Source: Rebecca billardiae RCC1528 (lineage: Eukaryota; Protista; Haptophyta). Taken from it: 64,000 bases of DNA. Numbering within the stretch: the stretch's first letter is position 1; each line of letters opens with the position of its first letter. The notes beneath the pieces were generated by a model. The model was not told the DNA's origin and ran no database searches. It saw only the letters and a list, made by a program, of their open reading frames with translations. The stretch is taken from NCBI GenBank assembly GCA_965240325.2, contig OZ251239.1, positions 434,001 through 498,000 on the forward strand. Direction: 5' to 3'. A program made the translations under genes and the position numbers. Of the stretch, positions 23,938 through 63,486 are shown one piece after another.

Positions 23938-24040
23938 CAGGTGGATACGGGTGATCTGGACAGTGGCCGACCCAACTCACGCCGAGGCCTCCCTGGTTGC
24001 TCAGGAGTAGCCCCTGTGTCCAGTAGCCCGTATCCACCTG
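23938..24040. mobile_element. 103-bp MITE with TA TSD (Tc1/mariner-like) upstream of the HKR gene
   Basis: TA|caggtggatacggg...cccgtatccacctg|TA. 14-bp perfect TIR extending imperfectly to ~24 bp. Confidence 0.8.
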
Positions 24041-24536: not shown

Positions 24537-25095
24537 ACTCAGAAGGCTGGGCGTGTGTGACGCGTCATGACGTGACGTCACGTCATGACGTCATGACGTG
24601 ACGCGAGGAGTGGCGTAACGTGACGCCCGGACAGCGCTCTGCCCACGCCTGGCACACCCGGACTCACAGTAGTGCCACAGGCGGCTGCGCGCGCGCGCGC
24701 GCCGGGCGCGCCGCGTCGGCGCCGCGCGGTGGCGGCTGACGGGCGGCGGTGCAGCCCTGCCCCATTCGTACCAGCTCGTGGATCCTCCAGCTCCACGGCC
24801 ACATGGTGCGGGAGCGGGAGCCCTCGCCTTTGGGCGACGAGCCCACCTCCTCTGTGCGGTCCGGCCAGCCGGAACCCGGCGCACTCCCTTACGGACGAAA
24901 CTGTCAATGTCAACGACTGATTAGTTTCTTATAACACCAATCACAAGAATAATACGACATACGTAACGGACGAAACGGTCACCGCCAAAAGACGTGTTGC
25001 TATGACGCGTAAATGACGCGTAAAACGCATGACGTCATGACGTGACGCTAGAAATGGGCGTCATGACGCGTCATAGGGTCCCAGGCCTGCTGAGT
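24537..25095. mobile_element. Probable degenerate non-autonomous TIR element with TGACG subterminal arrays
   Basis: Dense tgacgt/tgacgc/catgacg arrays at ~24558-24625 and ~25003-25073. Imperfect inverted ends actcag(a/c)aggc(c)tggg. No clean TSD. Confidence 0.45.
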
Positions 25096-26198
25096 CAGAA
25101 TGACGGCGCCGCCGGATTCCGCGCTTAGGCGGCACTGGTCCGGCTGGAACCGCCGCACCGCGGGCTGAGGGGCGGGGGCGAGGGCGACTTCGATGAGCGC
25201 AGTCCTGGTGCTCCATACTGTCCGATCCGCTGGCTGTTTGGCGTGCGCGCGGGTATATATATATATGTATACTAGTCCTCGCTCAGCTGCAAATCAATCG
25301 CATCGACCGTCGTGCGCCTCAGGCCAGCGGGGCGCGGACTCAGTCAGACAAGTGCCGCTCGCGTGTGCCACTGGTCGCCGTAGGCGAAGCGAGGTCCGGA
25401 CGAGGAGCAAGCTACCGGGCGCAGAGCCAAGCATGACAGCGTTCCGATGCTGCGCAAGCAACGCGTCGCCTTCGCACGGCAACTCGACGGCCGCAGCGGA
25501 GGCAGCGCCGGCCCCGCGCAGTGCGCGCGGCGGCGATGCATTATTTTTGTAGTACTGTGGGGCTCCACATTCTTTACTACATCCTCATCCTGTCGGCGCG
25601 CTGTCGCATCGGCGCCCAGTCGGCGAGTTCGGACGACGACGTTTTGTGGACGACGGTGGGGCGAGGACGACGGGCGCTGGCGCGCCGCGAGGCGGCCGCA
25701 GCCCTCATCCAGGCCTCGCAGGCGGACGGCTGAACGAATCTTCCGGCGGCGCTACCATCGGCGACGGCTTCATGGGCGGTGACAGTTGGCGGGCGTCAAT
25801 CTCGCCTGCCTGAGCTGTGTGCGTCTCTTATTCTTAGTAAACTGTATACAGTTTAGGGAATCCTCCGGAAGTCCGACGAGGACCGACCGAGCAACCAGAA
25901 CTCCGACAAACCTCCGCATCTCAGCACGGCGATTTCCGGACTGGCACCCCCGCCAGTTTTCCGACGGCCAGAAGCTTCGGGAGCGAGCAAATGGCGCCGC
26001 TCGCCCGCAACGCGGAAGATACCGCTCGCGGCGAACCGGCGCGAACGCCCGCCTTGTATTCGGGCGGAGTACCCTAATGAGCGGGGGTGGGCACTTTCGT
26101 ATTGCGCGCAGCCTGACGCCCACCCGCGACGAAACGACGCCGTCGACTCCTCCCGCCCGGACCGCCGCCGGAACGTTGCTCGTCAATTAGTTAGAGAA

Positions 26199-40385: not shown

Positions 40386-40585
40386 NNNNNNNNNNNNNNN
40401 NNNNNNNNNNNNNNNNNNNNNNNNNNNNNNNNNNNNNNNNNNNNNNNNNNNNNNNNNNNNNNNNNNNNNNNNNNNNNNNNNNNNNNNNNNNNNNNNNNNN
40501 NNNNNNNNNNNNNNNNNNNNNNNNNNNNNNNNNNNNNNNNNNNNNNNNNNNNNNNNNNNNNNNNNNNNNNNNNNNNNNNNNNNNN
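40386..40585. other. Assembly gap (200 N)
   Basis: Run of exactly 200 n. Confidence 1.
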
Positions 40586-43467: not shown

Positions 43468-43696
43468 CTCATCGGCCACGGCGGCCGTGGAGGGCGGCCG
43501 CTTGATGGCGGATACGCGCATCTCGCAGCCGTGTCTCGTCAGGCGGCAATCTGGAAACCTCGCTATCAGGGCGAGATTCTGCCTTTCGCGATTGACCAAG
43601 CAGGCGACCGAACCGTCGCAAACGAGTAAACGACGGCGCAATCAGCATTTTAGATAGAGTGATGTTTACCGAGCTGTCTCTAGCGTACCGATATTA

Positions 43697-43799
43697 CAGG
43701 TGGATACGGGTGATCTGGACAGTGGCCGACCCAACTCACGCCGAGGCCTCCCTGGTTGCTCAGGAGTAGCCCCTGTGTCCAGTAGCCCGTATCCACCTG
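43697..43799. mobile_element. 103-bp TA-flanked MITE, duplicate copy
   Basis: Identical to 23938-24040. Confidence 0.8.
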
Positions 43800-44295
43800 T
43801 ATCAAAGTCTCAACTCTCATATTACCCACTACTCACTACTGCGAAGGCCGTACTTGCCTATTATCGAGAATACCGCCGTATCCGTCGTCAAGTAGGGTAA
43901 AACCTGCCGCTCGACACAGTTGAATAGAAACTTGAAATTATAATAATATGATCATCACTATGATCCCGTTGACGAAAGCACTCGTCCGCAGCCTCGAGAT
44001 CAAACTCAAGCTTATGAGTTATGATATCATAGTTGCAGCGGATGAGCTCCAGAGCGGATTCGAGAATCGGGCCGATCGCCCGATCCATCGCAAAGATGTC
44101 GTCTAGCATGAACAGCATGAGCGACAGCAGCGTCGGCCCGGGCCGTTCCGCGCAGATAATCTCGGCGGTCGGGTCCGCGAATCAGTGCATTAGATCGCTG
44201 TGGGGGTGCGTACGGATAGCTTGTGAGTGGTTATAATGATGTCATCCTCGTTGGCTTGTCCGCCCCGTGCCGGCGTCATCGCCTCCCGGCTCAGA

Positions 44296-44854
44296 ACTCA
44301 GAAGGCTGGGCGTGTGTGACGCGTCATGACGTGACGTCACGTCATGACGTCATGACGTGACGCGAGGAGTGGCGTAACGTGACGCCCGGACAGCGCTCTG
44401 CCCACGCCTGGCACACCCGGACTCACAGTAGTGCCACAGGCGGCTGCGCGCGCGCGCGCGCCGGGCGCGCCGCGTCGGCGCCGCGCGGTGGCGGCTGACG
44501 GGCGGCGGTGCAGCCCTGCCCCATTCGTACCAGCTCGTGGATCCTCCAGCTCCACGGCCACATGGTGCGGGAGCGGGAGCCCTCGCCTTTGGGCGACGAG
44601 CCCACCTCCTCTGTGCGGTCCGGCCAGCCGGAACCCGGCGCACTCCCTTACGGACGAAACTGTCAATGTCAACGACTGATTAGTTTCTTATAACACCAAT
44701 CACAAGAATAATACGACATACGTAACGGACGAAACGGTCACCGCCAAAAGACGTGTTGCTATGACGCGTAAATGACGCGTAAAACGCATGACGTCATGAC
44801 GTGACGCTAGAAATGGGCGTCATGACGCGTCATAGGGTCCCAGGCCTGCTGAGT
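44296..44854. mobile_element. Degenerate TGACG-array element, duplicate copy
   Basis: Duplicate of 24537-25095. Confidence 0.45.
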
Positions 44855-45614
44855 CAGAATGACGGCGCCGCCGGATTCCGCGCTTAGGCGGCACTGGTCC
44901 GGCTGGAACCGCCGCACCGCGGGCTGAGGGGCGGGGGCGAGGGCGACTTCGATGAGCGCAGTCCTGGTGCTCCATACTGTCCGATCCGCTGGCTGTTTGG
45001 CGTGCGCGCGGGTATATATATATATGTATACTAGTCCTCGCTCAGCTGCAAATCAATCGCATCGACCGTCGTGCGCCTCAGGCCAGCGGGGCGCGGACTC
45101 AGTCAGACAAGTGCCGCTCGCGTGTGCCACTGGTCGCCGTAGGCGAAGCGAGGTCCGGACGAGGAGCAAGCTACCGGGCGCAGAGCCAAGCATGACCGCG
45201 TTCCGATGCTGCGCAAGCAACGCGTCGCCTTCGCACGGCAACTCGACGGCCGCAGCGGAGGCAGCGCCGGCCCCGCGCAGTGCGCGCGGCGGCGATGCAT
45301 TATTTTTGTAGTACTGTGGGGCTCCACATTCTTTACTACATCCTCATCCTGTCGGCGCGCTGTCGCATCGGCGCCCAGTCGGCGAGTTCGGACGACGACG
45401 TTTTGTGGACGACGGTGGGGCGAGGACGACGGGCGCTGGCGCGCCGCGAGGCGGCCGCAGCCCTCATCCAGGCCTCGCAGGCGGACGGCTGAACGAATCT
45501 TCCGGCGGCGCTACCATCGGCGACGGCTTCATGGGCGGTGACAGTTGGCGGGCGTCAATCTCGCCTGCCTGAGCTGTGTGCGTCTCTTATTCTTAGTAAA
45601 CTGTATACAGTTTA

Positions 45615-46103
45615 GGGAATCCTCCGGAAGTCCGACGAGGACCGACCGAGCAACCAGAACTCCGACAAACCTCCGCATCTCAGCACGGCGATTTCCGGAC
45701 TGGCACCCCCGCCAGTTTTCCGACGGCCAGAAGCTTCGGGAGCGAGCAAATGGCGCCGCTCGCCCGCAACGCGGAAGATACCGCTCGCGGCGAACCGGCG
45801 CGAACGCCCGCCTTGTATTCGGGCGGAGTACCCTAATGAGCGGGGGTGGGCACTTTCGTATTGCGCGCAGCCTGACGCCCACCCGCGACGAAACGACGCC
45901 GTCGACTCCTCCCGCCCGGACCGCCGCCGGAACGTTGCTCGTCAATTAGTTAGAGAAATGCGACGCCGGGGGGCGCGCCGCAAAACTTGCTCCCGAGCTC
46001 GCCACGAGGGAGGGCTGGGCGTGAGCACGACGTTAAGGGGGTACGCCTTCCACGCGCGCGGGCGTCGTGCGCGCGCCGCGCGGTCGCGCGCGGCGCATCG
46101 CGC
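45615..46103 (+). repeat. Left TIR of MULE (~489 bp)
   Basis: Reverse complement of 62892-63380; nearly perfect over the first ~395 bp. Confidence 0.93.
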
Positions 46104-49100
46104 ACACGCACCGACCGTTCTTGTTCCCTGCGGCCTCCCCTCGCAGGAGTTCCCCCTTCTCGCATCCGAGTCGGTCTGAGGCGTCGACGGTCGCCGGCCG
46201 CGACGAGCAGGCAAGTCGCACTCGTGATTCGTGAATGGTGCGAGGTCGCGGTGGGCCGGGGCGGGTGTGTGTGGTCGGCAGCGATGTTGGTGGCGTGCGC
46301 CGCCGCGCGCGCGCACACCGCACCACTCCCATGCGCCCCCGTCCCCTGTCTGACGATGTGCCCCGTGTGTGTGCTCGCGCGCGCCTGCGTTTGCCTCTCC
46401 GCCGCACGTGCTGGCACGTACCGCGCAGGCGGGCATGCGGCATGTGTCCGCCGGCCCCAGCAGTCAGGACGACCTGCTGCTCGTGGACGCGGTGATCGCA
46501 GCGGCTGACGACGCGTTGTGCACGCTGCAGTTCTCCTCGGCAGCAGCCCCGTGGACGTTCACCTTTGGTCTGGTGCTGTGCACCCTCGGCGTGGTCCACA
46601 GCACCGACGTGGGCCTTGGCGCCGCCGCCGCGCAGGTCACAGTGCCGCGCGTATGGGGTGGCAGCGGCGCCGACGCGCTGCTCACTGTGGTGGAGTGTGC
46701 GGAGTTGTTGGCTTCGCACCCGGACGCGCTGCGTGAGCGCGCGGACTCGGTGGCGCGCGTGTGCGCGGCGGCCCTTTGGTTCAGGGCCGTCGCGCAGATC
46801 GCCGTGCGCGCTGCCTGTGGTGCTTCCGCCGACGGGGCTCTGGCGGAGGAGGGCAGTTTCGCGGAGACGGCGCGACTGACGGCGTCCGCAGCGGCGCTCG
46901 GAGGGAAACCGGCGCCGCCGCCCGCAGGCACGTCCCACGCGCGCCGCTCGGGTGGCGCGGAGTCGCTGTCGCCGTCGTCCTCGGCGCCGACCCCAGGGCA
47001 GCACGCACGCGCCGCTGAGCACGCGCAGGGCGCATGCGCGTGGGCAGTGCGTGCGGCCTGGGCCGCCGCTCCGTTCCGGACGAAGCTGGCTCTGGCGGCG
47101 TTGTGCGCCCCCCGTCCGGATGCCCGCCCAGGTGCTGGGACTGGCGGAGGCGTCGACGACGTGCTCCCGGCGACGACGGCGGCGGCGGCGGCGCCGTCGG
47201 GCGCTTGGACGGGCGCGCCCCCCCCGTGCCCGCCGCTGTCATGCCCGTCCGAGGCGGTGATGTACTACGCGCGCGCCGTCTTCGGCGCGGACGCTGGCCA
47301 GTCCGAGCCTCTGTTCGTCGCCTTCGAGCGCGTGGCGTCGTGGCCAGCAGGCCGCAGCAGCCTCTGCGCGGACGCGCTGCGTGCGCGAGCGGCGGAGCTG
47401 CGCACGCAGGCGTACGCTGCCGTACGCGCGCTCTGCGCGCCCGTGCCGGCGCAGCCGCGCGCGTTCGTTCCCGCGTCGGCTGAGCAGGCACGCTGGCGCG
47501 ACCAGCAGCTGCGTGCGGAACTCGAGAGCGCCCGCTTGGCGTGGCTCGGCGCCGTCTCGCAGGCCGTCGTGGGGGCCGGCGAAGGGGTGGCGGCAGATGG
47601 AGCGCCGCGCGCTGCCACGTCCGGCGCCGCCGCTGGACGTGACGCCGCCGTGCGCGCAGCCGCCGTCAGGCTGCGTGCTGCCGTGGTCGCCGACGGCCAC
47701 GCCGGTCTTGCGGCCTTTGTGGCCGCGTGCGAGGACGGCTCGCTGCGCGAAGGGTGGCTGGCGCGGCCGTTGCTGCGGGCCGCCTCCACCATCGCCGAGC
47801 GCACCGTGTGGGCAGTGGTCATCCCGCTCGCGCCCGCGCTGGTGCACGTCGGCGAGGGCGCGCGTCTGCACCCCTTGCTCGACGCCACCTTCGCGCAGGC
47901 CCTCGTGGCCGGCGCGGCCGTCTCGCAGCCGCCAGTGACGCTGGTGCTGACGCTGTGCGGTGCGCACGCTGTCGTGGGCGCCGCTGCGCCGTGGCGCGAC
48001 GAGGTGACGAGCGCGGCGTCGGGCGCGATGCGCCCTGCCTCCGCCGTGGTGGTGCCGCGCGCGCTGCCGCCTGCAGGCGAGCCGCCGCTGGGCGACGCGC
48101 TGGCGCCGACGCCTGCGGCGGCGCCCGCGCCCAGCCTCGACGACATGCTCGCGCATAACGCCGCGGTTGGGCGCGCGCTGCAGGCCGCGTTTGGTGCCGC
48201 CGCTGCGGCACCGCAGCGTTTGGACATGGACATGGGCGTGCTGGTTGGCCCGTTGCGCGAGTACGTGCTGCAGCACGCAGGCCTCGGCGGGGACGGCGAT
48301 GCGTCCATGCCCTTGCTGGATGAGGGTGGCGGCCTCCTGCGCACGGTGCACGCGTACCAGTCCGCGGACGCGGGCGGCGAGGCGGCCGCGCAGCGGCGCT
48401 GGGGGGTGGGCGACCACGGCTCCTCTGCGCGCTCGGTGCTGGGGTGCCGCGCCTTTGAGCGCGTGGTGGCGGCGCTGAAGGGCGTCGTGAGCTCGTTGTT
48501 CCGCGGCGACGCCTCTGACGGTGTCCGCGGCCTCGACGCGCTCGACCTCACGGCCTGGCATGTCTTCGGGCGGCCGATGCGTCCGCCCGACGGGGGCCGC
48601 GGCACGTGCGACGACGGCGACGTCACGACGTACGGGTGGCACGTCGACGGCACGACCGACGAGGACCATCTGTGGACGGCAGTGGTCCTCTTGCACTTGC
48701 CGCAAAGTGTGCCCACCAATCCCTTCCCGCTGCAGACGGTCGGCGCGCGCCCCCCCGGTGCGCGCGCCGACGCCGTGCCGCTGCACGGCGACGTTGCCCT
48801 GCAGGAAAGCGCAGGTGCAGTGCACATCTTCCCCGCCATGTGGCATCACCGCTCGGCCCCCAGTGCGCGCGCCGCGTCCTCGGGGTCCGTGCCGTCGTCC
48901 TCGCGCAAGAGGCCTACGCGTCAGGGTGCGGCGGACGCGCTCGTCCTGAAGGCTGTGTTCTCATTCGGGGGGCGGGGCCTCGCGGACACATTCCGCGCTT
49001 CGTTCACGCCGCCGCCGAGCGCGCCTCGCCCCGCCGCCACGCCGTGCGCGGCGCGCTCCGACCCGCCTCCCACGCCGTATCGGCTCGTGCCCGCCCTCGA

Positions 49101-52100
49101 GCGCGGGCTCCAGCACTCGTTTGAGACCAGGCTGCGCTGGGGGGCTGAGCCCACGCGCGCTGGCGCTGACGCCCGCTTCCGGCTCGGCTCGCCTGCGCAC
49201 CACGAGTACGTCTCCCGCCTGGTGGTCGACCTGCCGACCGCGGCGCACGGCCAGCAGGCGCCGTCGGACCACGAGCAGCGGGCCTGGGCGCAGTCGGCGC
49301 TGCAGCTGGCGCTGCCCGTGTGCGCTGCCGACGGCGCGCAGCTCGCACATGAGCGCGCAGCGGCGCCTGCCGTGCCCCACGTCGTGGGGCTTGCGGGCGG
49401 CCACCCCGCGCCTCACGCCGACGGCGGTGGGCGCGCGCCCACCGCCGCGGCCGCGCACGGCACGGGCGCGCACGTGGGCGCCCCCTTTGACGAGGGCGCG
49501 CGGCCCCCACGCGCCGATGGCGTTGACGACCCGGCTGTCGGGCCGCGCGCGCCCACGGCCGTGCGTCGCCCCGACGCAGCGTCCGCCCCGCTGCGGCACA
49601 CCGGCGCCCGCCAAAGCTCGAGCTCGGACGCGCCGGGCGCGCACGAGCCCGCGTCGCCGCGGCCTGGCGATGGGCACTCTTCGCCCGCTCGCGTGGCAAC
49701 GCCAGCGCCGGGCGCACCCTGCGCTGCGGGCGACGCCGTGCCCTGCGTCGCGGTGACGGTGCCCGGCGCTGCTGTGTGCGCCGCGACGGCGCGCCCGCCA
49801 CTCCACCCGGCGGGGCCGCCCCTCGACAGCAGCAGCGCGCGCGCGGTGATCGCGCAGCCGCCCGGCTGCGCCTCGCGCGCGCCGCCGCAGCCGCGCGGCG
49901 CCTCCGGTGGCGACGGCGGCAATGACGACGACGACGCGCGGCTGAGGGCCCTCCCTGCGCTGCCGCACGCAGGTGGCCTCTTGTCCGGCGGGGACCTCGC
50001 CCTGGCCCTGCACGCCGGCCAGCGTGCCCACCTCGGTGGCCACCTTGCCGACGCGTTGGCGACGGAGAAGTCGGCGCCCGCATGGGCGCGCGGTGGAGTG
50101 CCCCTCGTCGACGCGTCCGTGGGCCATAGGACGCACACGACGGCGGCCGCCCGCGGCAACGCGCCGCTGTTCGCCCTGAGCGCGGACTGGCCGACGATGC
50201 GCGTCGGCGAGTCCGACGCCCGCGGCGAGCCGCTCGTCACGGACGCCGATCCCGCCAGTGCCGCCATCGACGTGCGCGACTGGGAGGAGGGCATCGCGGA
50301 CGACGACTGCGCGGACGCCCGCGCGCGCGCGGCGCAGGCGGCACTGCAGGCGGACGAGTCCGCCGACAGCGACGCCGCTCGCGCGCGCGACCCGCTGGCT
50401 GCCCTCATGCCGTGTCCACCCATCGTCGCTCGCGCGCAGCCGCCCTCCACCGGTCCCGCCGAGCCCCGCGCCGGCCAGGCCGGCGCCCGGCTTGTTGCGC
50501 CGGAGTCGCTGCACCACGGCGGTGACGCCGGGTACTTCCGCTACTCCGCGCCGTCGAGCACCTCGGCGAGCACGTCGGCGGCAGCGCACCGCCTCGAGCT
50601 CCGGCCCCTGGCACTGTGGAGGAAAATGGGCTTGCGGGCGCCGCGCCCGTACTCCCAGGTGAAGGCGGACGCCACCCTGCTCGAGCCCCCGATGGTGCGC
50701 CAGGTGTACCCGCGCCTCGCCGACGCGCTCACGCACGCCTCGGAGTGCGCGCTGCACCGGGGGGCCATGCCGCCGACGCGGCGCGTCGACCGCGCCAAGC
50801 TGACGATCGGATGCCCCACGCCCGGGTGCCCGTCCGTGGTGGTGGTGGGCCCGTCGAAGTACGTGGACACGTTTGGCGCGCCGCCGTGGGCCGTGCAACG
50901 CTCGGTCGCGCACGGCTCCATGTGCCGCAACCTGCGCATGGGCAAGGGGTCCGAGGAACACCCCATCGGCTCGCTGCCGCGCCCGACCAACCAGCCGGGC
51001 GTGCGCACGACGCCGTACTCCCAACACGAGCTCGGGCGGGCGATCGTCGAGGACTGGAAGGCGCGCTTGGCCCGGCGCGGGACCACGCACGCGCAGCTGT
51101 GCTACGGCCCGCAGCAAGCACGAGAGGTCGCGCGCCAGCTGGACGCAGAGCTCCCCATGGGTGAATCGCTCATCGCGCGAGCGCACAAAGAAGCGCGCGC
51201 CGAGATCTACGGGGACGACACGGCCATGTCGCGCGACCTCGTGGCCGTGTGCGCGTCGCTGTCGCAGGAGGGCAACGAGGTCGCGCCCATCATCTTCCAC
51301 GAGAACTCGGTCGAGGACGCGCTGCTGGCCATGTTCGGCCGCGTGCACGACGAGGTGCAGCAGGGGCTGCCGGCGGGCGCGCAGCGCGCGGCCTTCAACC
51401 CCGACGCGGCGGAGGTGCAGAAGGCGCTGGCTGACGTGCGCGGCAAGAAGGCAGTGGGTGGCTTCCACTACGTGCCCAAGCAGGCCAAGGCGCTTTACCG
51501 CGAGCACTTTCACGCGAAGGGCAACACGGCCGCGTTCAGCGACGCGTGCTTCCTGCACCGCCCCGCCAGCGGTGGCGCGAAGCGCGCGGGTGCGCGCGCC
51601 CGCCGCACCCGGGCACGCCCTCGCGACGCCGCGTGCGTCCGTGCCGCCTCAGCGCCCGCCCGTCTGACCTGCCCGCGCGCACGCACGCGCGCGACGCAGG
51701 CATGCTCTTCGTCACGCTGGCCGTGAACGCCAACCGGCAGCTGTTCGTCTTGTGCGTGTCGTACATCGTCGACGTGGAGTGCCTGGACTCGTGGTGCGCG
51801 CACGTCGGATACCTCATGCAGCACCTCGGCGGGGCGGCTGTGTGGGACGACCCCAACGGCGTCACCATCTCGGACGGCCAGAAGGGCCTGCGCGGCGCGT
51901 GGAAGCTGCTGTGCCCGCGCAGGCACCTCTTCCTGTGCACGTTCCACAAGCGCCAGACCTTCATCACGGGCTACGCACACTCGGCGAACGAGGTGCCCAC
52001 CATCCTGCGCGTGTTCGACGCGTGCGTGGACGCGTTGACCGAGGAGGTGTGGGAGGCCGCCTGGGTGGAGATGCCAGAGTCGGCCAAGCGCATCCTCGAC

Positions 52101-55100
52101 GTCATCCCCCGCGAGGAGCTCTTCCCGTGCTTCGCGCCGGTGTCCCTGCGCGGCTACGTGACGTCCGCGCCGGCGGAGTCCTTCATGCACTGGCTGCTGC
52201 CGGTGCGCAAGGCGCAGGGCCCGGTGTGGATGCTGCTCGACCTGCACGACAACCTCTTTCGCCTCTACGCGACGCACCGCAGCGTCGCCGTGCGCCACGC
52301 CCTGAAGCCCGACGCCGATGATGAGGTGCACGGGTTGCCGCCACGGCACCTGGAATACGTGCGCCAGCAGGTGAGCACGGCGCGCACGCTCTCTCAGGTG
52401 GAAGTGCACCGTGTCCTCGACGGGCCGCACGCAGGTGCCCTGCGCATGCTCAACACCACGGACGGCTCGGCGCCGCGCCACGTGTACCTCGACGAGTTCC
52501 GGTGCTGCGCGTTGCTGCGCCGCAAGCGCCTGCCGTGCATGCACTTCTGCCGCGTGGCGACCTCCGTCGGCCGTGCCATGGGCACGTGCTTGCCCCAGGA
52601 CCTGCGCTGCGAGACGTGGTTCGCGCAGGTGGGCCTTCGGGTCGAGCGCGACGCCAACGACACCCGGGTGGACACGCTCGGGCGCGTCGTGGCCATCACC
52701 AAGCTCGACGTCATCACACCGCCCCAGCGCCTGGAGGACGCCATTGCGGCTCTGCTGCTGCCCGCTCTCGCCAAGCGCGCCCTGCTCGAAAAGTACGTGG
52801 CCATGCCAGCGGTGCCCGCGCGCGTGGGCAGGCCCGCGTCCTCGGCGCGACGGCTGGCGTTCTGGGAGGGCCGCGCCGGGGCGCGCCACCCGCGCGCACC
52901 GCGCGCGCGCGCGCCGCGCGTGCAGTTGGGCAAATCCGCGGCGTCGTACGTGCGCCCCTTGAGGGAGCAAGCCCCGGACGGCGACTTCGCCCGGCGCGTG
53001 CGCGAAGCGCACCGCGACGAGCTCGCGCGTGTGCTCGAGGGGCTGCCGGAGCACCTGTACGGCATCGCGCACACGCACGTGCTCGACGACACTAACGTGC
53101 TCGTGCGCGTGGCCGGCCCGCTCCGCGAGGGTGTGGTTGCGAACCAGCGACGTCGCCACTTTGCCACGTACACGGCCGGCACGACCGCCGCCGCGCAACT
53201 GCGCTGCTGCGCGTGTTTCGACCCCGAGGCCGCGGACCTCAGCGCGGCGTGGCCGGCGGACTCGCCGCCGATCGACCCCCGACTGGCGTGCCAGGGCTGC
53301 GCCTGCTTCATCCACTCGCCCGCGCAGTGCAAGTATGTGTGGCACCTCGGCGCGCTGGACAGCGGGCTGTACATGTGCACGTGCTGCTACTTCCTGCTCG
53401 TCGCGGGGGCGTGGAAGCGCCTGCGCGAAGCGCGCGCAGCCGCGGCGGGCGAGGCGGCGGCGCCCGACGGGCCGCGCGGCGCGAGGCCGGAGGACGTGCC
53501 ATACCACCGTATGCGCGGACAGCACGGCGGTGGGGCCGCGCGCGGCAACCCGGCGCGCACCGCAGGCGCGCGCGGGGGCCGCGCAGGCGGCCGCGGGGGC
53601 CGCGGCGCGGCGGCGCCCGCGCCCGGGCGCGCGCAGCCGGCGGCCGCCCAGACGCGCGACGGCGCCGCCGCGGCGGGCGCGGGCGCGCGCGGCGGCCCGC
53701 GCCGGCACTGCGCGCGCGCGATCGCCTCGCAGGCACTTGGCGGCACCGGCGTACGCATGGGCTTCGCGACGGCACCGATGCCAAACGCCGCCACGCAGCG
53801 GCCGGCCGCACCGCCTGAGGGCACGACGGGCCCGCGCAGTGGCGCGGACGCCGGCACGACGCCCGCCGCGCGCGCGCGCGCGCACGCCGCGGAGCCGCTG
53901 CCGGCCACGGGCGACACAGTACCGCTGGCGGCGACTGAGCATCCCTTCCGCCCCCCGTGGCCCGGCGCCCACGCGCCACCGCCACCGGGTGCGCGAGTCC
54001 CTCGGGCGCGCGCGGGCGCGGCAGAGCCACCGGCGGAGGCGGCGGAGTCCGAGTCGGCGTACGCGCGCCTCGCTGACGACAGCGCCGCAGTGCTCGCGGC
54101 GGTGCAGCGCATACCTGGCATCGGTCGGGGCAGGGCAGCCATGTTCATGTGCAGTCGCGGCCTGTCAGCACCGTGGCCCACGCTCAGCGAGACGGCCGGT
54201 GACGCATTCGGCGCGTCCAGCGCGACGACGGGCAAGGTGCTGGCACAGTTTGCGCGCGCCGCCGCCGCCCCCGCCGAGCTGGCGCGCGCGCACGCGTCGC
54301 CCGCCGTGCCCGCCGAGGGCAGTGGCGGCGCGAGGGGCTCGGGCGGCGCCGCTCCGAACGCGGCCTCCCACGTGTGGGCGCACGCAGGCGCACACGACGT
54401 CGCGGCGGCGGCGGCGGGCCTGGCGGACGTCCTGGCTGGCGGCGGCGGCGCGGGCGCAGGCGCCGCAGGCCAGGCGGGCGCCGCGGCTGGCACCTCCCGC
54501 GCGGGCGCGGGGGCCGCGTCTGCGCCGTGCGCGCCCAAGCGCCCTCGGACTGCGGCCGCCGCCGACGACGCGGGCGGTGCGGCCGCGGATGGGCGCCTGC
54601 CGCCGGCTTCGCGCCAGGCGGCGGGCGCCCGCGCGTCCACGGCGGGGCCATCGTCGGCGGCGCGGTCGGTGCCGACGCCGGGCCCAACGCGCGCAGGCGC
54701 CGACCTGCTGGGGACGGCGCGTGGCACGTCTGGTGCCGCGGACGACACAGCCGTCGCCACCGCGGACGACGCGGTCGCCCACTTGGCGCGCACTGGTCTG
54801 CCGGTGCGCGACGCTGGAGCGCGCGCCGCGGGCGATGACCGCCACGCGCCGGTGCGCCTGTTCCACGCCGCCGACGCCGCCGCCGGCGCAGACGACCACG
54901 ACGCCGAATTCGCCCGATTACGGCTGTGCTGCGCCCAGGCAGTGCTCGACGACCTCTGGGGCGCGGGCGCCGCACAGCCGTTGCCCGTGCCAGCCGACGG
55001 TGACGACGTGCTGCACGCGGTGCTCGCGCACGCGCACGCGCGGGCGCGTCCGCCCAGCACGCTTGAGGCCCTGTGGTGGGCGTGCTGCGCGCGGCGCCTG

Positions 55101-57341
55101 CGCGCGGCGGCCGCGTCGTGGCTGGCCGCGCACGCGCATGCGACGCCCACCGAGCACTCCGTCGGCTGGGGTGGCGCGCTGGGCCCGGCCGAGTCGGCAG
55201 AGGACCTGCGAGCGCAGGCGCGCTTCATCGGCTTGTGCGGCGCTGACGTGCGCGCACTTCCCCCGGAGAGCGCAGGTGGCGACGAAGCTGGGCAGGCGCG
55301 TTTGCGGGCTCTGCGCATGGTGGCCCCCGACGACTCGTCGTCGTGGCACACCCCCGGCCAGGGCGTGCGCGATCTGGACGACGCAGTGACGCTGGCAGTG
55401 CGAGCGGCGGAGTACACGTGCGACGGGTACGTCAGCAGCCCGGGCAACACGTGCGATGGCCCTGAGTGGTACGCGGCAGTCGCTCGCGCCGCCGGCGTGC
55501 ACCTCCTCGTCTTCGACATGGCCTACGCACGCCGAGCTCGCGACGTGCACGGCGTCGCCATGCGTGAGCACGTGCGGTGGTATCCTCCGACGGCAGTGCG
55601 CGTGCCGCCGGCGCCGGCGGCGCCACGCGCTCGCGGGGGCGCCGGCGCGAAGCGCCGGCGCGCCGACACGCCCGACGCAGGCGCCGCGCACGCGGACGCA
55701 CGTCCGCTGTGCGAAGCGCGCCTGAGCCTGGGACGCGAGACGCACGCACGCGTCCTGCGCACGCTCGACGTCGGGGCGATGGGCACCGGCTGGGTGGCCA
55801 TCGTGCGCAACGTGTGTCCTCGCCGGCAGTTCTACGCAGTGGTTGCGCCGCAGGCCACCCCGCGCGCGCACGGGGTGTTGCCGGCGTCGCGCTGGAGTGC
55901 GTTCCAGCCGGCTGCGGACGCGCACGTGAGGCTGGCGTCCAGGCGGCGCGGGTGCGAGGTGGATGCGCTGGACCCGAGCGCGTTCGGCACCGAGGTGGTC
56001 CCTCTCGACGGCTCCGACGGGGCATGGCGGTGCGACGTGGGCTTGGGGCTGCGCCTGGCCTTGGGCGAGACCGCCGCTGACGTGACGGCGGAGCGATGCC
56101 GCGCTGACGTGACGGCGGGTGATGCCGCGCCACGCGGCGCAGCCGCGCCGCGCGCCGCGGCGGCGACGGACGCCACCGTGGACGCGGGTGCGGCGGCGCC
56201 GGCGCCCGCCGGGCACGGGGCTGCGCCGGCTGCGGTGGCTCCGGCGGCCGCCGCACACGTGCACGCGCCGGTGGACGACGCCGCGGTCCTGCTCGAGCGC
56301 CTGGGCTTCCCCGCGCTGCCCCTGCCGCCGGCGTTGCCGCCCGAGGCGCGGGCTGGTGCACAGACCGGAGCACCCGGCGGCGTGGATGGCGACGGCAACG
56401 TCGCCGCGGCCATCCGCGAGCTCTTCGGCGGCGGCACGAGCGTGCAGGACGTTCCCGGCGATGGCGACTGCTACTTTCACGCGTGGCTCGCGCACGACAC
56501 GCGTGGCGTGCGGGCCGACCTGCCCGCCGCCAACGCGCGCGCGCAGACGCTGCGCGACGGCGTGTGCTCGTACATCGCGTCGTGGGAGGACGAGCACGGA
56601 CCGGGCGAGACGCTCGGCACGGCGTCGGCCACGGCGTCGGCGGCAAGCGCGCTCGGCATGCTTGGCGTCAAGCCAGCATCCATCCCCCGGGCCCGCACCG
56701 GCCAAGGACTCGAAGTGCAGGACGAGGACTGGCAGGAGGTGCTGCCACTGCCACTGCGACATACTGGAGGCGTGCGGACGCTGGGAGCAGCGGCGCGCGC
56801 GTACGCGCGCGGCGCCCGGTACACGGGCGACGGCGCTGGCGCGCATGCGGCGCGCGCTGGTGCGTGGTCGGCGTGGGGCTCGCACGTCGCGACGGCGCGC
56901 GCCACGGGCCTGCCGCTGGTGGTCCTTGAGCTGCGCGGCGGGGCTACGCCGGAGGAGGCGGCGTGGCGCGCGTTCACCGACAACGTCTGGTTCTACCCCG
57001 TGCAGACGCGGCCGGGCCTTCGCTGGCGGCGGACTGACGACGGCGGGCGCAAGGGCAGCGTCGCCGTGAGCACGCATGCGCACCTGCGCCTGCGTGACGA
57101 GCGCACGCGGCGCGCCTTGCAGCGTCTGGACGTCACGCAGTTGGGCACGACGTGGATGGCCGTGGTGTACGACGGCCGTTGCCACTTCGGCGCGGTGGTG
57201 TCGGCGACGGCGCCCCTGGAGGCGCGTTCGGCGCGCGACAACAACGAGGGGCGTCTGGCGCACTTCATGCGAGCTACATCACCCTTGCAGGGGTACGTTG
57301 AGTGCGCACCACGCCGCCTGAGCACGCCAGGTGCCAGCTAA
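45958..57341 (+). CDS. MULE transposase polyprotein (~3,600 aa): 2OG-Fe(II) dioxygenase, WRKY-like Zn finger, DDE, SWIM, PHD, HhH, pseudo-OTU, OTU. Exons 45958-46040?, 46147-46210?, 46429-51589, 51700-57341 (alternative start ATG 46435)
   Basis: GWHVD...FPAMWHHRS...K; CPTPGC...HGSMC; D(51541) D(51873) CTFH E(52176); RCC...LPCMH; CCAC...CQGC..FIH...C...YMCTCC; RIPGIGRGRA; VPADGDDVLHA; VPGDGDCYFHA...YDGRCHF. The four-exon model totals 10950 nt in one open frame. Confidence 0.88.
51590..51699 (+). other. Intron within the MULE DDE domain (110 nt)
   Basis: gcgG|gtgcgc...ctgac...acgcag|GC. Fuses the 1785-aa and 1931-aa ORFs right after the first catalytic Asp. Confidence 0.9.
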
Positions 57342-60300
57342 CAGAACGACAGGCGCCGACTCACGGCACCGGCCGGCCGGCCTGCGTCCGAGCTGACGAC
57401 GACATAGCACGGGCCGGCACAGTGTGGGCCCCCGGCGGCGTGTATCAGTGTTGTCGCGCGTGGCGCTGCTTGCATCCCGCTAAGACCTGCGCTAAGACCT
57501 TCTCGGCGGGCCCCGCCGTAGGCCCTTGTGGCGCCGTCACTGCGAGTGGCGCAGAGGCGCTGGCCGGGGGGGTGCCTGTGGCCGTGTGCTCGGAGAACCG
57601 GGCTCAGGCCACGGCGATTCCGACGAGCCACTCCGCCGGCACCCCGGGTGCCGAGCTCGTGGCCAGATGCTGCCAGCGGTGGCGGCCACCCGCGTGGCCG
57701 CCCCGGGTGGCGCGCAGCCTGTGCACGCCACCGCGACGCGCGCGCGCGCACGGGGGCGGTCGGGCGCGACTGAGCCAGGGCTGCGCGTACACGCCGCTCG
57801 GCGTGCGCACGGCTGGCGCCGCCCGATGTGGTGTGTGCGCGCACCTGTGGGCGGCGCGTGGGCACGTCAGGACGCGCCCTTGTGGGTCGGCGTCTACTGC
57901 GCGGCCGGCGGGGGCTGGCCCGCGGGGGCTTCGTCGGCCTGCGCGGCCGGCGCACGGAGCGACAGTGCAGCGGCCTGGCGGGCACACGCGAGTCAGGGGG
58001 CGGCACTCGGCGCCGCGCGCGCTGGCCGAATGCGACCGGCGGCGGCGCGCCACGCCGTGCCGTGGGTGCGCGCGACGTGGGCGCAGCGGACGCAGCGCTC
58101 ACCGACGGGCCCGCAGCCGGGGCGTGCGCGCCGTGCGGTGCTTCGCCTGTTGGCAGCTGGACGCACGCCGCGTGCGCCGACGCGTGCGGGCCGGGCTGTG
58201 CGCCACCTGCGCTGCGGTCCATCATGAACTGCGTCAACGCCTGCATAGACGCCACCATCGCGCTCGCGATCTCGTCACGTTTCATTGCGGCCGCGCGATC
58301 CTCGTCGCGTCGGCGCGCCGCCTCCGCGCGCTCCTGCTGGCGCCAGGCCTCGTCCGCCGCGCGCTCCTGCCGGCGCCGCTCGTCGTCCGCCGCGCGCCAG
58401 GCCTCGTAGTCCTTCTGGCGCTTGGCGTCGTTCGCAGCGAGTTGTCCGATCGCTTGTGCCATTGCGTTGGGGATGCCGTGCACCATCTCAGCGAGCTGGG
58501 CGTGGGCCGCAGCGAGCTCGGTGCACATGCGCGTCGCCTGTTCGGGTGGCCCGGGTGCGCGCGCGACGGCGGATGGCCGTGTGACGGCGACGCGGCCCGG
58601 GTCGCCGACCGGCCGGCGCGCCACCACACGCCCACCGGCGGCGCCGCCCGCGCCGCCCGCGTCGGCGCCGCGTTCGTTCAGGCGACGCTTGCGCGCTGGC
58701 GCCGCCTGTACGTGCCGCGCCAGCGAGGGCGCGCGCCTGTGGAGCGCGGCGGCGTACATCTTCGGCGCGTCCACGCCGCTGCTTTTGCCGGTGACTGGGT
58801 CCGCCGGGTGCGTCCAGAGCCGATCCTGGCAGAACGGGACGATGTCAGCCCACACGCTGATGCACAAGGGGCGAAAGTCCACAATCGCACCCACGGGCGG
58901 CGCGGCAGGTGGCGTCCCGGCAGGCGGCGGGCGCGCCAGGGCGGCTGCCTTCACGGGGTCGCGCATGTGCGGGACGAAGAACAGCGTGCCGAAGTTGCCG
59001 GCGTCGGCGTCGTCGCCGGCCGCCGCGCGGCTGTGCGTTGACAGCGCCTCCGTCGACTTCCACGAGCGCGTCTTCGAAGGCACGTAGGTGAACTCGAGCA
59101 CCTCGTCCCGGTGGAGTGCCCGCGAGCTCGTGTCGGCGTTGAGCACGCGGTCGTAAGCACCGGCGTTATCCTCGGAGACGGCGAGGAGCTCGAAGGTGAG
59201 CCGCTTCTTCCGCTCGGGCGCGACGAGCCGTGCGCTGACGATGCGCACCTTGGTGAGGTAGTCCGCCGCCTCGAAGGACGCACCATCGCCCACGCTGACG
59301 TCGGCGAGGGCGTCGTATCGCAGGTGTGCCGCCTTGACGCGCAGCACGAGCGCCGAGGCGCACGCGATGGCCGCCGCGACGCACGTGTGCTTCGAGGCGA
59401 GCATCAGCTCTTGTTCATGGACGGGCAGCTCGCCGACGACGCCTGCGACGCGCACGCGCGTCCCACCGCCCGGCCGGGGGAGAGGCCTGTCAAACGAGCG
59501 CTGCGGGCGGCCGGCGACCATGATCTGGTGGAGCGTGTGCAGCAGGTCCGCCGACGCCGCCGTGCCCCCAATCACGTCGTAGTTCGACTGCACGTACGTG
59601 AGCGCCGCCTCCGCGATGGCCGCGGCGTTCGTCATGAGCCCGGGCGGGTCGCCATCGGGCGCCCAATGGCATGGCCCGATGCCGAGCGCGCTGCACACCG
59701 CGGAGGCGCCCATGAGCACGTCCGTGGACGTCGGGACCACGTCCCGGCGCGGGCGGGGCGGCAACGCGTCCGTCTCGTCCGGGCTGGGCGGCGAGTCGTG
59801 GAGCGCGGGGGCGGCGTGCTGGACGGGGGGCGCAATGGCCCGCGGCGGCGCTGACTGCAGCTCGCACGCAGCAACCTCACGCCGGCTGACGGCGGCGGCG
59901 AAGGCGTCGACCGTGAGGTCCGTGCACGTCGCAGCCGTCATCGCGCCCGCCGCACCACTGGGCGGCCGCGTGGCGAAGGTGAGGAGGCGCCAGCCCTTCT
60001 CGAAGCGGATGGCGTACGCGTGCGCGCCGACGACGGGCTCCGACTCGTCGGTGTCGTCGGTGTCCACGGACCGGTAGTCCACCACGGCCACGGCGGCGTG
60101 CAGCAAAGGCGACGTCCCCTGCTCAGCGGGCGCCCGCAGCGGCGTGGGCACAAGCGCGCACCAGGAGGGCGCCTGTGCAACCACGGCGGGGAGGCCGAAC
60201 ACCGCCTGTCCCGAGCGCCGCATCGAGGGCAACGCAAGCGCCCGGTGAACCCAGGGCGCGTCGCCGCCTGCGACGCCATCGTCGTCGGCCTCAGCGTCCG

Positions 60301-63037
60301 CTAAGGCGACTCGCACGTCCGCGTCGAGGACGTAGGGCAACGGGCCGTGCACACCGAAGTGCTCGCCTGCTGCGCGCAGGGCGAGCTCAGAGACAGAGCC
60401 GCCGACGCTCGCGGCGGCGCCGGCGTAGAACTCGCGCACCGCATCGTCCACCTCGCTGCGCGTGTACAAGGCGCCCGAGGCGCACAGCTCGCGCACAGCG
60501 TCGGCATCCGTGAGCACGCCGAAGTGCTTGTTGTTCGTGGCATCGCACACCACGTTCACCACGCGGACCGTGCCGCCGCCGCCGCCGAGATGCCGTGACG
60601 CGAACGCGCGGTTGAACCTGAGGATGGCCGGCACCAATCGGCCGTTGTTCGGTTGCGGCCCGTGCTTCGTCGTCCGCGCGTCCGCATCCGCCACCGCGCT
60701 GGGGCGCACCAGCACGTGCGCGTGCGCCTGCGCCGGCGCGGCGGGCGTGTCTCCGCCGAACCTCCGGCGTTTCCCGTAGATGCCGCTGAAGAAATGATCC
60801 ACGTGCTGCAAGACATCGCTCATCGCGAACAGCTCGCGTGAGCCGCCGTCGCCGCTGCCGTAGACGCCGCCGCCGTCGTCAGCGTGGCCGCCACCGCCGG
60901 GTTGCGCGGCGGCGGGCGCCTGCTGTGGTGCATGGGAGTGCGACCCCGCTGCGCCAGCCGCCGCTCCACCCATCGACGCCGTCGCCGCCCGTGCCACCTC
61001 GCCCGAGGCAGCACCACCGGAGTCATCTGAGTTGACGCCCGCGGGGCCGTCGGCGGCCGCAGCCGGCGCCGGCGGCGCCGGCGCCGCCGCGGTGACGCCG
61101 GTGGCAGCCGCCCGCGCCTCGGCGGGTGCGCGTGGCGGCTCGGCGCGTTCGGCGCGCGTCGCGGTCGACGCCGTCGCCGCCCGTGCCACCTCGCCCGAGG
61201 CAGCACCACCGGCGTCATCTGAGTTGACGCCCGCGGGGCCGTCGGCGGCCGCAGCCGGCGCCGGCGGCGCCGGCGCCGCCGCGGTGACGCCGGTGGCAGC
61301 CGCCGGCGCCTCGGCGGGTGCGCGTGGCGGCTCGGCGCGTTCGGCGCGCGTCGCGGGGCCGCCGGCGGCCGCAGGCGGCGGCGCCGGCGCCGCCGCGGTG
61401 ACGCCGGTGGCACCCGCCAGCGTTTCGACGGGTGCGCGTGGCGGCTCGGCGCGTTCGTCGCTTGTCGCGGGGCCGCCGGCGGCCGAAGGCGGCGCCGCCG
61501 GCGCCGCCGTGACGCCGGCGACCGCCGTCGGCGCCGGCGGCGGCGCCGGCGCCGGCGCCAGCGTTGCGACGGGTGCGCGTGGCGGCTCGGCGCGTTCGTC
61601 GCTTGTCGCGGGGCCGCCGGCGGCCGCAGGCGGCGCCGCCGGCGCCGCCGTGACGCCTGCGACCGCCGTCGGCGCCGACGGCGGCGCCGGCGCCGAGGTG
61701 ACGCCGGGCAGCGCTTCGGCGGGTGGCGCAAGTGGCGGCTGGCGGCGCATGGCCCGCGTCCGCACGCCGCCGCGCCCGTTGTGGTGAGCCGCCCCCTGCG
61801 CGCCGCGCTGCCCCGCAGCCTCCTGCTGGATGCCCTGGGCGGCGTAGCTGCCGCCGCCCACGCGCGTGCTGCCGTGGCGGGCCGGCCGGCCGTCGGCGCC
61901 CTGCTCGGCGCCCTGCTCGGCGCCCGGCTGGGCGCCCTGCTCGGCGCCCTGCTCGGCGCCCGGCTCGGTGCCCTGCTCGGCGGCCTGCTTGCCATGCCCG
62001 GCGCCCGGCTGGGCGCCCTGCTCGGCGCCCTGCTCGGCGCCCTGCTCGGCGCCCTGCTTGCCCTGCTCGGCGCCCGGCCCGGCGCCCGGCCCGGCGCCCT
62101 GCCCGGCGCCCGGCTGGGCGCCCTGCTCGGCGCCCTGCTCGGCGCCCGGCTCGGCGCCCTGCTCGGCGGCCTGCTTGCCCTGCTCGGCGCCCGGCTCGGC
62201 GCCCGGCCCGGCGCCCGGCTGGGCGCCCTGCTTGCCCTGCTCGGCGCCCTGCTCGGCGCCCGGCTCGGCGCCCTGCTCGGCGGCCTGCTTGCCCTGCCCG
62301 GCGCCCTGCCCGGCGCCCGGCTGGGCGCCCTGCTCGGCGCCCTGCTCGGCGCCCGGCTCGGCGCCCGGCTCGGCGCCCTGCTCGGCGGCCTGCTTGCCCT
62401 GCTCGGCGCCCGGCTCGGCGCCGAGCAGGGCGCCGAGCAGGGCGCCCTGCTCGGCGCCCTGCTCGGCGCCCTGCCCCTGCTCGGCGCACTGCTCGCCGGC
62501 GGGCGGCGCACGCACGTGCGCCGCTGGCACCCTCTTCAACGAGCCTGCGCCCTCGACTGTTCCATCCGCGGACGCACCGACGGTGTCGCCAGGGACCGCA
62601 GCCCACGCATGAGCAGACACTCCCTCGGCAGCCCGGAGGACGTACGTCTGCACTCGCCCGTGTGCGCCGACCCCAAGCGCCGCGACCACAGCACGGACTG
62701 CCGGTGCACCCTGCTCGTACACCACGTCCACAGCAGCCCCGTTCGCGAAGCTCGTCGCAGTCGGAGTCGTCCCCGCAGGCGGCGGCGGCCTGCGCGCGGC
62801 ACGCGGGCACGACGCCGCGCAACGACGCAGAACGCACGGCGTGACGACATGCGCGAGCGCACGCCGCGCGCGCGAACGAAGACACACGCGCGCGCGATGC
62901 GCCGCGCGCGACCACGCGGCGCGCGCACGACGCCCGCGCGCGTGGCAGGCGTACCCCCTTAACGTCGTGCGAGGCATCGATCGTCCCTCGTGGCGAGCTC
63001 GGGAGCAAGTTTTGCGGCGCGCCCCCCGGCGTCGCAT
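57338..63037 (-). CDS. Convergent MULE gene B, unknown function (exons 63037-62955, 62789-~57338; 3' end uncertain)
   Basis: 1899-codon ORF starting in the right TIR with an in-frame 165-nt GT-AG intron (62954-62790). Tetrapeptide repeats, Ala/Pro repeats, a globular-looking central region and a charged coiled coil. Confidence 0.7.
60975..61720 (-). repeat. Imperfect long coding repeats (AEPPRAP...GVTAA...AAAGGPAT) in gene B
   Basis: Four to five degenerate copies visible in the translation. Confidence 0.8.
61894..62490 (-). repeat. 12-nt coding minisatellite ([16 protein letters not shown] tetrapeptides) in gene B
   Basis: ggcgccgagcag-type units with occasional 9-nt GKQ units. Confidence 0.95.
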
Positions 63038-63380
63038 TTCTCTAACTAATTGACGAGCAACGTTCCGGCGGCGGTCCGGGCGGGAGGAGTCGACGGCGTC
63101 GTTTCGTCGCGGGTGGGCGTCAGGCTGCGCGCAATACGAAAGTACCCACCCCCGCTCATTAGGGTACTCCGCCCGAATACAAGGCGGGCGTTCGCGCCGG
63201 TTCGCCGCGAGCGGTATCTTCCGCGTTGCGGGCGAGCGGCGCCATTTGCTCGCTCCCGAAGCTTCTGGCCGTCGGAAAACTGGCGGGGGTGCCAGTCCGG
63301 AAATCGCCGTGCTGAGATGCGGAGGTTTGTCGGAGTTCTGGTTGCTCGGTCGGTCCTCGTCGGACTTCCGGGGTTTTCCC
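62892..63380 (-). repeat. Right TIR of MULE (~489 bp)
   Basis: Inverted copy of 45615-46103. Confidence 0.93.
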
Positions 63381-63486
63381 TACAGTTTACTAAGAATAAG
63401 AGACGCACACAGCTCAGGCAGGCGAGATTTTATTTGTTTCAGCATCAGAGAAAACCGAAAAAGAAAGTCGCCGCCGACGAACGACG

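Follow-up and report, generated by a model that had tools for sequence, protein, structure and literature searches.

A 17.8-kb Mutator-superfamily transposon of the haptophyte Rebecca billardiae with a 3,598-codon transposase frame and predicted oxygenase-like and OTU-like domains

The window analysed here, a stretch of 64,000 nucleotides from Rebecca billardiae RCC1528 (assembly GCA_965240325.2, contig OZ251239.1, positions 434,001 to 498,000 of the forward strand), contains a complete DNA transposon of the Mutator superfamily which spans 17.8 kb (45615-63380; all positions are those of the window). The element is bounded by terminal inverted repeats (TIRs) of 489 nt, the left one (45615-46103, plus strand) starting with GGGAATCC and the right one (62892-63380, minus strand) beginning with GGGAAAAC; in a global alignment of both ends, the left TIR is ~97% identical to the reverse complement of the right one. 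An inverted-repeat search returned a 406-nt arm at 98% (45606-46011 against 62984-63389) together with an extra arm of 84 nt. Each TIR is abutted by one copy of a 9-bp target-site duplication (TSD), TACAGTTTA, at 45606-45614 on the left and 63381-63389 on the right. Mutator elements are characterised by a TSD of 8-11 bp (typically 9 bp), by long TIRs of tens to hundreds of bp and by a DDE transposase homologous to the MULE and Transposase_mut families in which D, D and E are kept. The 9-bp TSD at both ends and the 489-nt TIRs agree with this description, as does the transposase through its relatives, and the structure is that of an intact cut-and-paste Mutator element.

The interior is occupied by three long open reading frames (ORFs), two on the plus strand (46369-51726 and 51546-57341) and one on the minus strand (57338-63037). 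The two plus-strand frames form a single gene (gene 1) that is interrupted by a 110-nt GT-AG intron in phase 1 (51590-51699, plus strand, with GT at 51590 and AG at 51698-51699). Exon 1 (46435-51589), from the first in-frame ATG to the splice donor, holds an uncharacterised N-terminal part, a 2-oxoglutarate (2OG) oxygenase-like domain, a candidate Cys/His finger and the N-terminal part of the DDE domain with its first Asp; exon 2 (51700-57341) closes with a TAA stop at 57339-57341. Joining exon 1 to positions 51700-57338 gives 10,794 nt, or 3,598 codons, free of stops, and the transposase frame is in this way extended on both sides of its core. An alternative donor (GT at 51572) would give a 128-nt intron and also preserves the frame. 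The intron falls inside the DDE domain, and two contigs with distant homologues (L001 and L002) switch frame at the same place, after a ...KGG motif, a third (L003) being continuous there. The change of frame shared by the first two argues for a real, conserved intron position rather than a frameshift.

Periodicity in the G+C content of third codon positions and a map of codon log-odds trained on the best parts both choose these three frames over nearly the full length of the element. Coding signal is missing only in the TIRs and at 57360-58080 and 62640-63380, and is weak at 46800-47040, 53520-54000, 54480-54720 and 60960-61680. Since a random frame at ~78% G+C is expected to meet a stop every ~93 codons (computed from base frequencies), the 1,785 and 1,931 open codons of the two plus-strand frames lie far beyond chance. 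About half of the frame extension is GC-driven low-complexity sequence, with ~48% of the spliced protein (1,740 residues) lying in runs of at least 60% Ala/Gly/Pro/Arg/Ser.

The Mutator-type DDE core, split by the intron (51142-52480, plus strand), contains the invariant catalytic residues D1703 (FSDACF), D1777 (ISDGQKG) and E1878 (PAESF; spliced numbering), and an F-x-C-x2-H motif after the second Asp is likewise invariant. A HMMER search with the 1,200 residues from the DDE domain onwards against 1.84 billion representative proteins returned 13 relatives of 297-619 residues and 25-31% identity (E 4e-27 to 8e-4, the best at 4e-27), which cover query residues 2-328; the same search gave no match to the part holding the PHD-like finger, the helix-hairpin-helix (HhH) motif and the first OTU copy, and no long relative. 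The relatives carry weak to clear Pfam matches to MULE and Transposase_mut, one of them with MULE at 7.6e-13 plus SWIM. The element's own Pfam match to MULE (E 0.008, 17 bits) lies below the cut-off of 27.6, and a profile of the family matched PDB entry 6xg8, named 'Mutator family transposase', with E 0.027.

Downstream of the catalytic Glu lies a SWIM-like CC-x9-C-x-H finger (52503-52550, plus strand), whose C269, C270 and C280 show no variation among 9 sequences and whose counterpart in one relative (P0013) is matched by Pfam SWIM. A C4HC3 PHD-like Cys/His cluster follows at 53205-53390 (plus strand), and its pattern (CCAC...CxGCxCxIH...C...CxxC) is common to P0004, P0005 and P0006, the three relatives that reach that far towards the C-terminus. 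The cluster was not recognised by PHD profiles in Pfam or PDB searches. Its retention in relatives of ordinary size indicates that this transposase lineage inherited the PHD-like finger from its ancestor and did not acquire it later; the ancestral transposase of this clade would have had ~900-1,000 residues, this finger included. On grounds of homology, the DDE core, the CC..CxH finger and the C4HC3 PHD-like finger are firm predictions.

Two further motifs were recognised at motif level only. A C-x4-C...H-x3-C cluster upstream of the DDE core (50812-50925, plus strand) is a candidate finger of WRKY/GCM1 type, and the WRKY/GCM1 fingers of MULEs (Mutator-like elements) also sit upstream of the DDE domain (PMC1702500). 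This pattern arises in 12% of shuffles, and the cluster showed neither a profile match nor pairwise similarity to the clearer finger of the homologue on L001. A single HhH motif (VQRIPGIGRGRAAMF; IPGIGRGRA) lies at 54090-54140 (plus strand); its pattern, written after the sequence was seen, occurs in 2 of 2000 shuffles, and no profile support was obtained from Pfam or from a PDB phmmer search of the stretch from the PHD-like cluster to this motif. Elsewhere in gene 1, phmmer of the N-terminal 633 residues against PDB gave no relevant match and a PHROGs search nothing useful. Metagenome scans yielded no match with a single protein and one contig of 1.4 kb with an alignment.

The C-terminal 330 residues of the predicted protein probably form an OTU-like cysteine protease domain (OTU2; 56349-57338, plus strand) with intact catalytic motifs (PGDGDC3309YFH and GRCH3547F), and ~490 residues upstream lies a paralogue (OTU1; 54843-55901, plus strand) that appears inactive, the catalytic Cys being replaced by Asp2821 (PADGDD2821) and the His by Gln3095 (RRQ3095F). 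The two copies find each other in BLASTP with E 3e-6 and are 32% identical over ~330 residues with their motifs in register. OTU2 carries the OTU catalytic signature of D-G-[DN]-C-[LFY]-[FY] and a C-terminal H-[FY]; the pattern, again written after the sequence was seen, was found in 0 of 2000 shuffles. Sequence matches of OTU2 to known OTU domains are each weak and none is significant alone, but they are mutually consistent: phmmer against PDB returned only two OTU domains of nairovirus L proteins (E 0.1), Pfam gave OTU (PF02338) at E 0.21 beside an equally weak match to UVSSA_N, and a profile of the two OTU sequences found EschOTU (6w9s) as its only match in PDB (E 0.63). An Atlas language-model search assigned 60 of 100 matches of OTU2 to the top OTU set; its top score was 0.92, the 177 shared features exceed that tool's mark of 170, and giant-virus OTUs are among the nearest clusters. 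A homologous-protein search with OTU2 was blank, and tblastn of the OTU region against phage genomes gave no match. We regard a pair of one dead and one live OTU domain as very probable.

On a JGI contig of 2.2 kb (3300016936, L004), positions 126-452 encode, just upstream of a related MULE core and in another frame, an OTU-type Cys motif (DDGNCALHAL) together with a stretch resembling a UIM (EEEAVQLAVAISLSL); Pfam does not recognise this region. This contig could represent a second independent association of an OTU with a MULE, or be chimeric.

Towards the other end of gene 1, positions 48352-48969 (plus strand) encode a predicted 2OG-Fe(II) oxygenase-like domain of PF13640/PKHD type. The iron-binding triad H-x-D...H is present in its family context, as H736 and D738 in TYGWHVDG (TYGFHVDG in E. 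coli YbiX) and as the distal His805 in HIFPAMWHH. In the Atlas search the best match of this region scored 0.94 (161 shared features), and 78 of 100 matches belonged to PF13640 (2OG-FeII_Oxy_3, prolyl-4-hydroxylase (P4H)-like), nearly all the rest to related 2OG sets. A targeted hidden Markov model (HMM) was built from E. coli YbiX and eight 2OG oxygenases of cyanophages and pelagiphages and run unfiltered against the spliced protein, the second ORF and both of these reversed. It gave only two matches, collinear, which fall on the predicted motifs TYGWHVDG and GAVHIFPAMWHHRSAP. Shuffles of the whole protein reached the HMM score in 4 of 1000 cases globally and 2 of 1000 in windowed form, and among 1,266 six-frame pieces of 300 residues from the whole 64 kb, the 2OG region and its duplicate scored 5.4 bits and all others at most 0.7. 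Searches of the 2OG region with Pfam, PDB phmmer and PHROGs, two homologous-protein searches and tblastn against phage genomes were all blank. The Atlas matches listed were all of the PF13640/P4H kind (a few also with PF13661, Asp_Arg_Hydrox or Pox_C4_C10), no test targeted at JmjC, TET, JBP or AlkB having been made; JmjC, TET_JBP and 2OG-FeII_Oxy_2 were absent from general Pfam scans. The region is probably a double-stranded beta-helix domain of PF13640 type whose catalytic competence is uncertain, and, judged by its matches, it resembles oxygenases of PKHD/prolyl-4-hydroxylase type, not those of JmjC, TET or AlkB type.

The second gene (57338-63037, minus strand) converges on gene 1. It has 1,899 codons and a coiled-coil-like stretch, and the stop codons of the two frames overlap in CTAA at 57338-57341 (TAA on the plus strand, TAG on the minus strand). 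Its coding signal is clear at 58080-60960, weak at 60960-61680 and returns over repeats up to ~62640. Both ends of this gene are uncertain, since its in-frame ATGs at 63037 and 62977 fall within the TIR, which is free of coding signal, and its last ~250 codons show none either. Searches for relatives in Pfam and PDB returned none, and the best Atlas score was 0.67 with no family. Minisatellites at 60973-62474, just inside the right TIR and within the 5' part of this ORF, consist of units of 114-192 nt (60973-61695) and of 50 copies of a 12-nt unit (61893-62474). Each TIR contains an ATG (ATGCGACGCC...), at 45958 and at 63037; the one in the right TIR opens the 1,899-codon frame, and the one in the left TIR is in the phase of gene 1 with a stop intervening.

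An earlier note on this DNA, prepared from its letters alone, had described a giant, intact Mutator-type element of 17.8 kb, one open frame of ~3,600 codons joining the DDE transposase to extra domains, a dead and a complete OTU, and a second large convergent gene. These descriptions are borne out by the 489-nt TIRs and the 9-bp TSD, the stop-free frame after intron removal, the motifs and mutual similarity of the OTU copies, the Atlas matches of OTU2, and the coding signal of the minus-strand frame. The motifs that it had named are all present in the order that it gave, with uneven support, the WRKY-like finger and the HhH standing at motif level. Profile support, which it had proposed as a check on the domains, was obtained for the DDE core through its relatives; Pfam stayed below its cut-off for every domain.

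A second copy of the element (copy A; 25856-40385, plus strand) is cut off by an assembly gap of 200 N (40386-40585); its left flank and TSD match those of the complete copy. The 19.6 kb before the gap (20827-40385) and the sequence after it (40586-60173) are 99.56% identical, with 87 differing columns (58 substitutions and 29 indel columns), of which one falls in the flank, three within the element's first 6 kb and all others beyond 52000. Copy A was considered as an independent insertion and rejected, its flank and TSD being those of the complete copy and its end coinciding with the gap. The near-identical flank and the uneven distribution of the differences, which pile up towards the gap, suggest neither two insertions nor a true tandem duplication; more probably, copies of a multicopy repeat were left unmerged, or were partly joined into a chimera, during assembly. 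Contigs of one public run (X1) carry the letters of copy A at 51213 and 54102 together with four other variants, which shows that several slightly different copies of the element exist in that sample.

The 49 nt outside each Mutator end are perfect complements of each other. This outer inverted repeat was considered as an extension of the Mutator TIRs and rejected, since the same end of ~46 nt also occurs by itself, next to TA, at 16119 and 16960. The outer repeats belong instead to another, Tc1-like element, which is flanked by TA and has ends of the form CAGT..., starting CAGTTTAC. Such ends, consisting of TA and then CAGTTTACTAAG...GGCGAGAT over ~46 nt, are found at 16117-16163, 16958-17004, 25798-25846, 45557-45605 and 63381-63429. 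The Mutator element has inserted exactly at the head-to-head junction of two of them, a perfect palindrome of 98 bp, and its TSD copies TA and the 7 nt that follow it at the end of the neighbouring element. Elsewhere in the window, host-like genes lie between TA-flanked ends (for example, one for a HATPase_c protein at 20796-23882), and tandem repeats at 15354-17682 with a unit of ~840-940 nt contain one TA-CAGT end per unit. Host genes further upstream encode a Ser/Thr protein kinase (6746-7990, minus strand; Pfam Pkinase, E 6e-52) and an EF-hand protein (8356-10551, plus strand).

The locus is likely to represent an autonomous, recently mobile and very large cut-and-paste transposon of the Mutator superfamily (a MULE, perhaps Rehavkus-like) that carries accessory domains. 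The N-terminal Cys/His finger and the TIRs would direct binding, and the DDE core would excise the element and reinsert it with a 9-bp stagger. The live OTU could act as a deubiquitinase in cis, on ubiquitin or a ubiquitin-like modifier, and either protect the transposase or target ubiquitylated host factors of repair or chromatin at the site of transposition; this role follows proposals made for Ulp1, OTU and USP domains on Mutator, Ginger1, Helitron and IS4-like transposases (PMC2836005). The dead OTU may serve as a module that binds ubiquitin or a substrate, and for the oxygenase-like domain a protein hydroxylase or a degenerate fold seems likelier than an eraser of DNA or histone marks.

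Several observations weigh against this reading of an autonomous transposon with functional accessory domains. With whole ORFs and 18 sub-pieces as queries, Pfam returned only weak MULE and weak OTU matches and no domain at its cut-off, and AlphaFold run without an alignment produced no confident fold for OTU2 (pLDDT 35) or for the 2OG region (pLDDT 34.5). No relative of the same architecture was found in the 1.84 billion proteins or the metagenome scans. The sole public run with element sequence consists of fragmentary contigs of low depth that contain no splice joints, and additional in-frame introns, or separate products from internal promoters, may exist. On this last point rests an explanation which we consider doubtful yet worth weighing, namely that the frame is open but yields several products, in-frame introns or internal promoters giving a transposase of normal size and a separate oxygenase and OTU; its corollary, that the 3,600-residue fusion is an artefact of GC-rich DNA with rare stops, is held in the same doubt. 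The stretches of weak coding signal within gene 1 (46800-47040, 53520-54000 and 54480-54720) and the openness of other frames across 53029-55519 would both be accommodated by it. Against it, however, the two open stretches of 1,785 and 1,931 codons far exceed chance, a separate upstream gene would need an in-frame stop and none is present, and the domains flanking each weak stretch are in the same frame. It is improbable that the accessory domains are decaying passengers from host genes, as in Pack-MULEs, with no role for the element, although their present state gives this idea some purchase. One OTU is already dead. In the oxygenase-like domain, an alignment with nine family members places Ser in the column of the conserved 2OG-binding Arg (G-x-R, ~10 residues after the distal His), with an Arg three residues before it, and the distal His is followed by ~30 residues of low complexity. 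The differences between copy A and the complete copy look neutral (46 non-synonymous against 10), so that no purifying selection is visible, although no such signal is expected between recent copies anyway. These features of the oxygenase-like domain and this pattern of substitutions also count against the preferred reading. Decay of this kind is nevertheless difficult to reconcile with 10.8 kb of open frame showing codon periodicity throughout and with the intact motifs of OTU2 and the intact HxD...H triad.

The combination of domains has also invited more specific functional proposals. In some RNA viruses, papain-like and OTU-like proteases both process polyproteins and remove ubiquitin, and the live OTU might similarly cut the 3,598-residue product at disordered linkers into oxygenase, transposase and protease. 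The unusual length of the frame, with ~48% low-complexity linker between compact modules, and the viral affinities of OTU2 (L-protein OTUs as closest sequence matches and giant-virus OTUs among the nearest Atlas clusters) are in keeping with self-processing, but no cleavage sites were identified, the proposal is purely inferential and no such processing is known for the OTU-bearing proteins of Ginger1 and Helitrons; we regard it as rather unlikely. The earlier note had favoured a self-contained anti-silencing or targeting system with a role like that of VANC, in which a PHD reader, an oxidative eraser and a histone deubiquitinase would act together. Domains able to act on chromatin in other proteins do share one frame here; OTU2 keeps its catalytic residues, and the oxygenase-like domain its metal triad. 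The 2OG-Fe(II) dioxygenase of that proposal is probable from the triad, the Atlas matches and the targeted HMM and falls short in its canonical Arg, but its casting as an oxidative eraser finds no support, every matching family being of PKHD/P4H type (PF13640) and not JmjC, TET/JBP or AlkB. Nor does the PHD-like finger fit the part of an added histone reader, since ordinary-sized relatives of the transposase share it and no profile identifies it as a PHD. The Pfam and HMMER searches revealed nothing similar to VANC or to a chromatin protein, and we judge an anti-silencing role to be improbable. Equally remote is a self-sufficient 'counter-defence' Mutator element in which a deubiquitinase pair, an oxygenase and a zinc-finger chromatin reader, in one polypeptide with the transposase, would oppose silencing or ubiquitin-based restriction, which, if true, would constitute a new functional class of transposon accessory system in a GC-rich protist or alga.

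On the preferred reading of a mobile Mutator element with accessory domains, the interest of the locus lies partly in its scale. The usual Mutator transposase has ~800 residues, and the product of gene 1, if translated as one protein, would be about four times that size. To our knowledge no longer cut-and-paste transposase is known, a statement that has no systematic comparison behind it. Half of this length is low-complexity and GC-driven, and function is predicted from sequence, which calls for caution. Ubiquitin and SUMO proteases have been gained repeatedly by the Mutator, Ginger, Helitron and IS4-like superfamilies (PMC2836005), and the element adds to this recurring and unexplained capture by unrelated transposons. 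Being multicopy and apparently active, with its catalytic motifs preserved, the family would lend itself well to tests of transposon-borne proteases, which may stabilise the transposase, control DNA repair, act on chromatin or process the product itself.

Among known systems, MuDR and other MULEs share with the element a 9-bp TSD, long TIRs and a MULE-core DDE domain followed by a SWIM-type finger. The maize MuDR genes mudrA and mudrB are convergent and each starts beside a TIR, and the two convergent genes described here likewise have their 5' ends next to a TIR. The element differs from MuDR in its size (17.8 kb against ~5 kb) and in the length of its transposase frame (3,598 codons against ~800), and from MULEs in that its core is only 25-31% identical to the nearest known cores; its second gene has no similarity to anything, and there is no evidence of kinship with mudrB. 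The Rehavkus transposons of arthropods and annelids have a 9-bp TSD, long TIRs, a PHD finger, a minisatellite before the 3' TIR and a single ORF (PMC6446971). By description only, the element resembles them in its 9-bp TSD, long TIRs, candidate PHD-like C4HC3 cluster and minisatellites (60973-62474), and it differs in having two ORFs and extra enzyme domains. VANDAL21 is also a Mutator-family element with an accessory protein of its own, VANC, which is described as a separate small protein with demonstrated hypomethylation activity (PMC6446971); no similarity in sequence or domains to the present element was found in the Pfam and HMMER searches.

The capture of proteases and PHD fingers by DNA transposons is well documented (PMC2836005, PMC6446971, bioRxiv 10.1101/2021.04.23.441226). 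Ulp1 together with PHD has been published for Mutator and Ginger1 elements, and OTU for Ginger1 and Helitrons (PMC2836005, PMC11417382), and Helitron-like elements have captured OTU, UCH, Ulp1 and 2OG-FeII_Oxy_2 domains (PMC11417382). The novelty claimed in the earlier note for the combination was in this respect overstated, since Ulp1, OTU, PHD and 2OG domains had all been reported on transposons (PMC2836005, PMC11417382). Ulp1-bearing MULEs and Ginger1 (PMC2836005) resemble the element in having a C-terminal cysteine protease of ubiquitin/SUMO type on a DDE transposase, sometimes with a PHD finger. However, in the papers found the protease on Mutator elements is Ulp1 and not OTU, and in the present element the OTU is duplicated, with one copy dead, and an oxygenase-like domain lies at the other end. 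Helitron-like elements (PMC11417382) are similar in their recurrent and stable capture of deubiquitinase and 2OG-oxygenase domains. These elements differ in their enzyme (RepHel), in the type of oxygenase (AlkB-type Oxy_2 against the PKHD/P4H-type Oxy_3 of the element) and in carrying the domains mostly on separate ORFs. Against this background, the Rebecca element is unusual in its scale and in a Mutator transposase frame that is predicted to carry both a pair of OTU rather than Ulp1 domains and an oxygenase-like domain of P4H type; within the searchable literature, no earlier Mutator element appears to have been described with these two additions.

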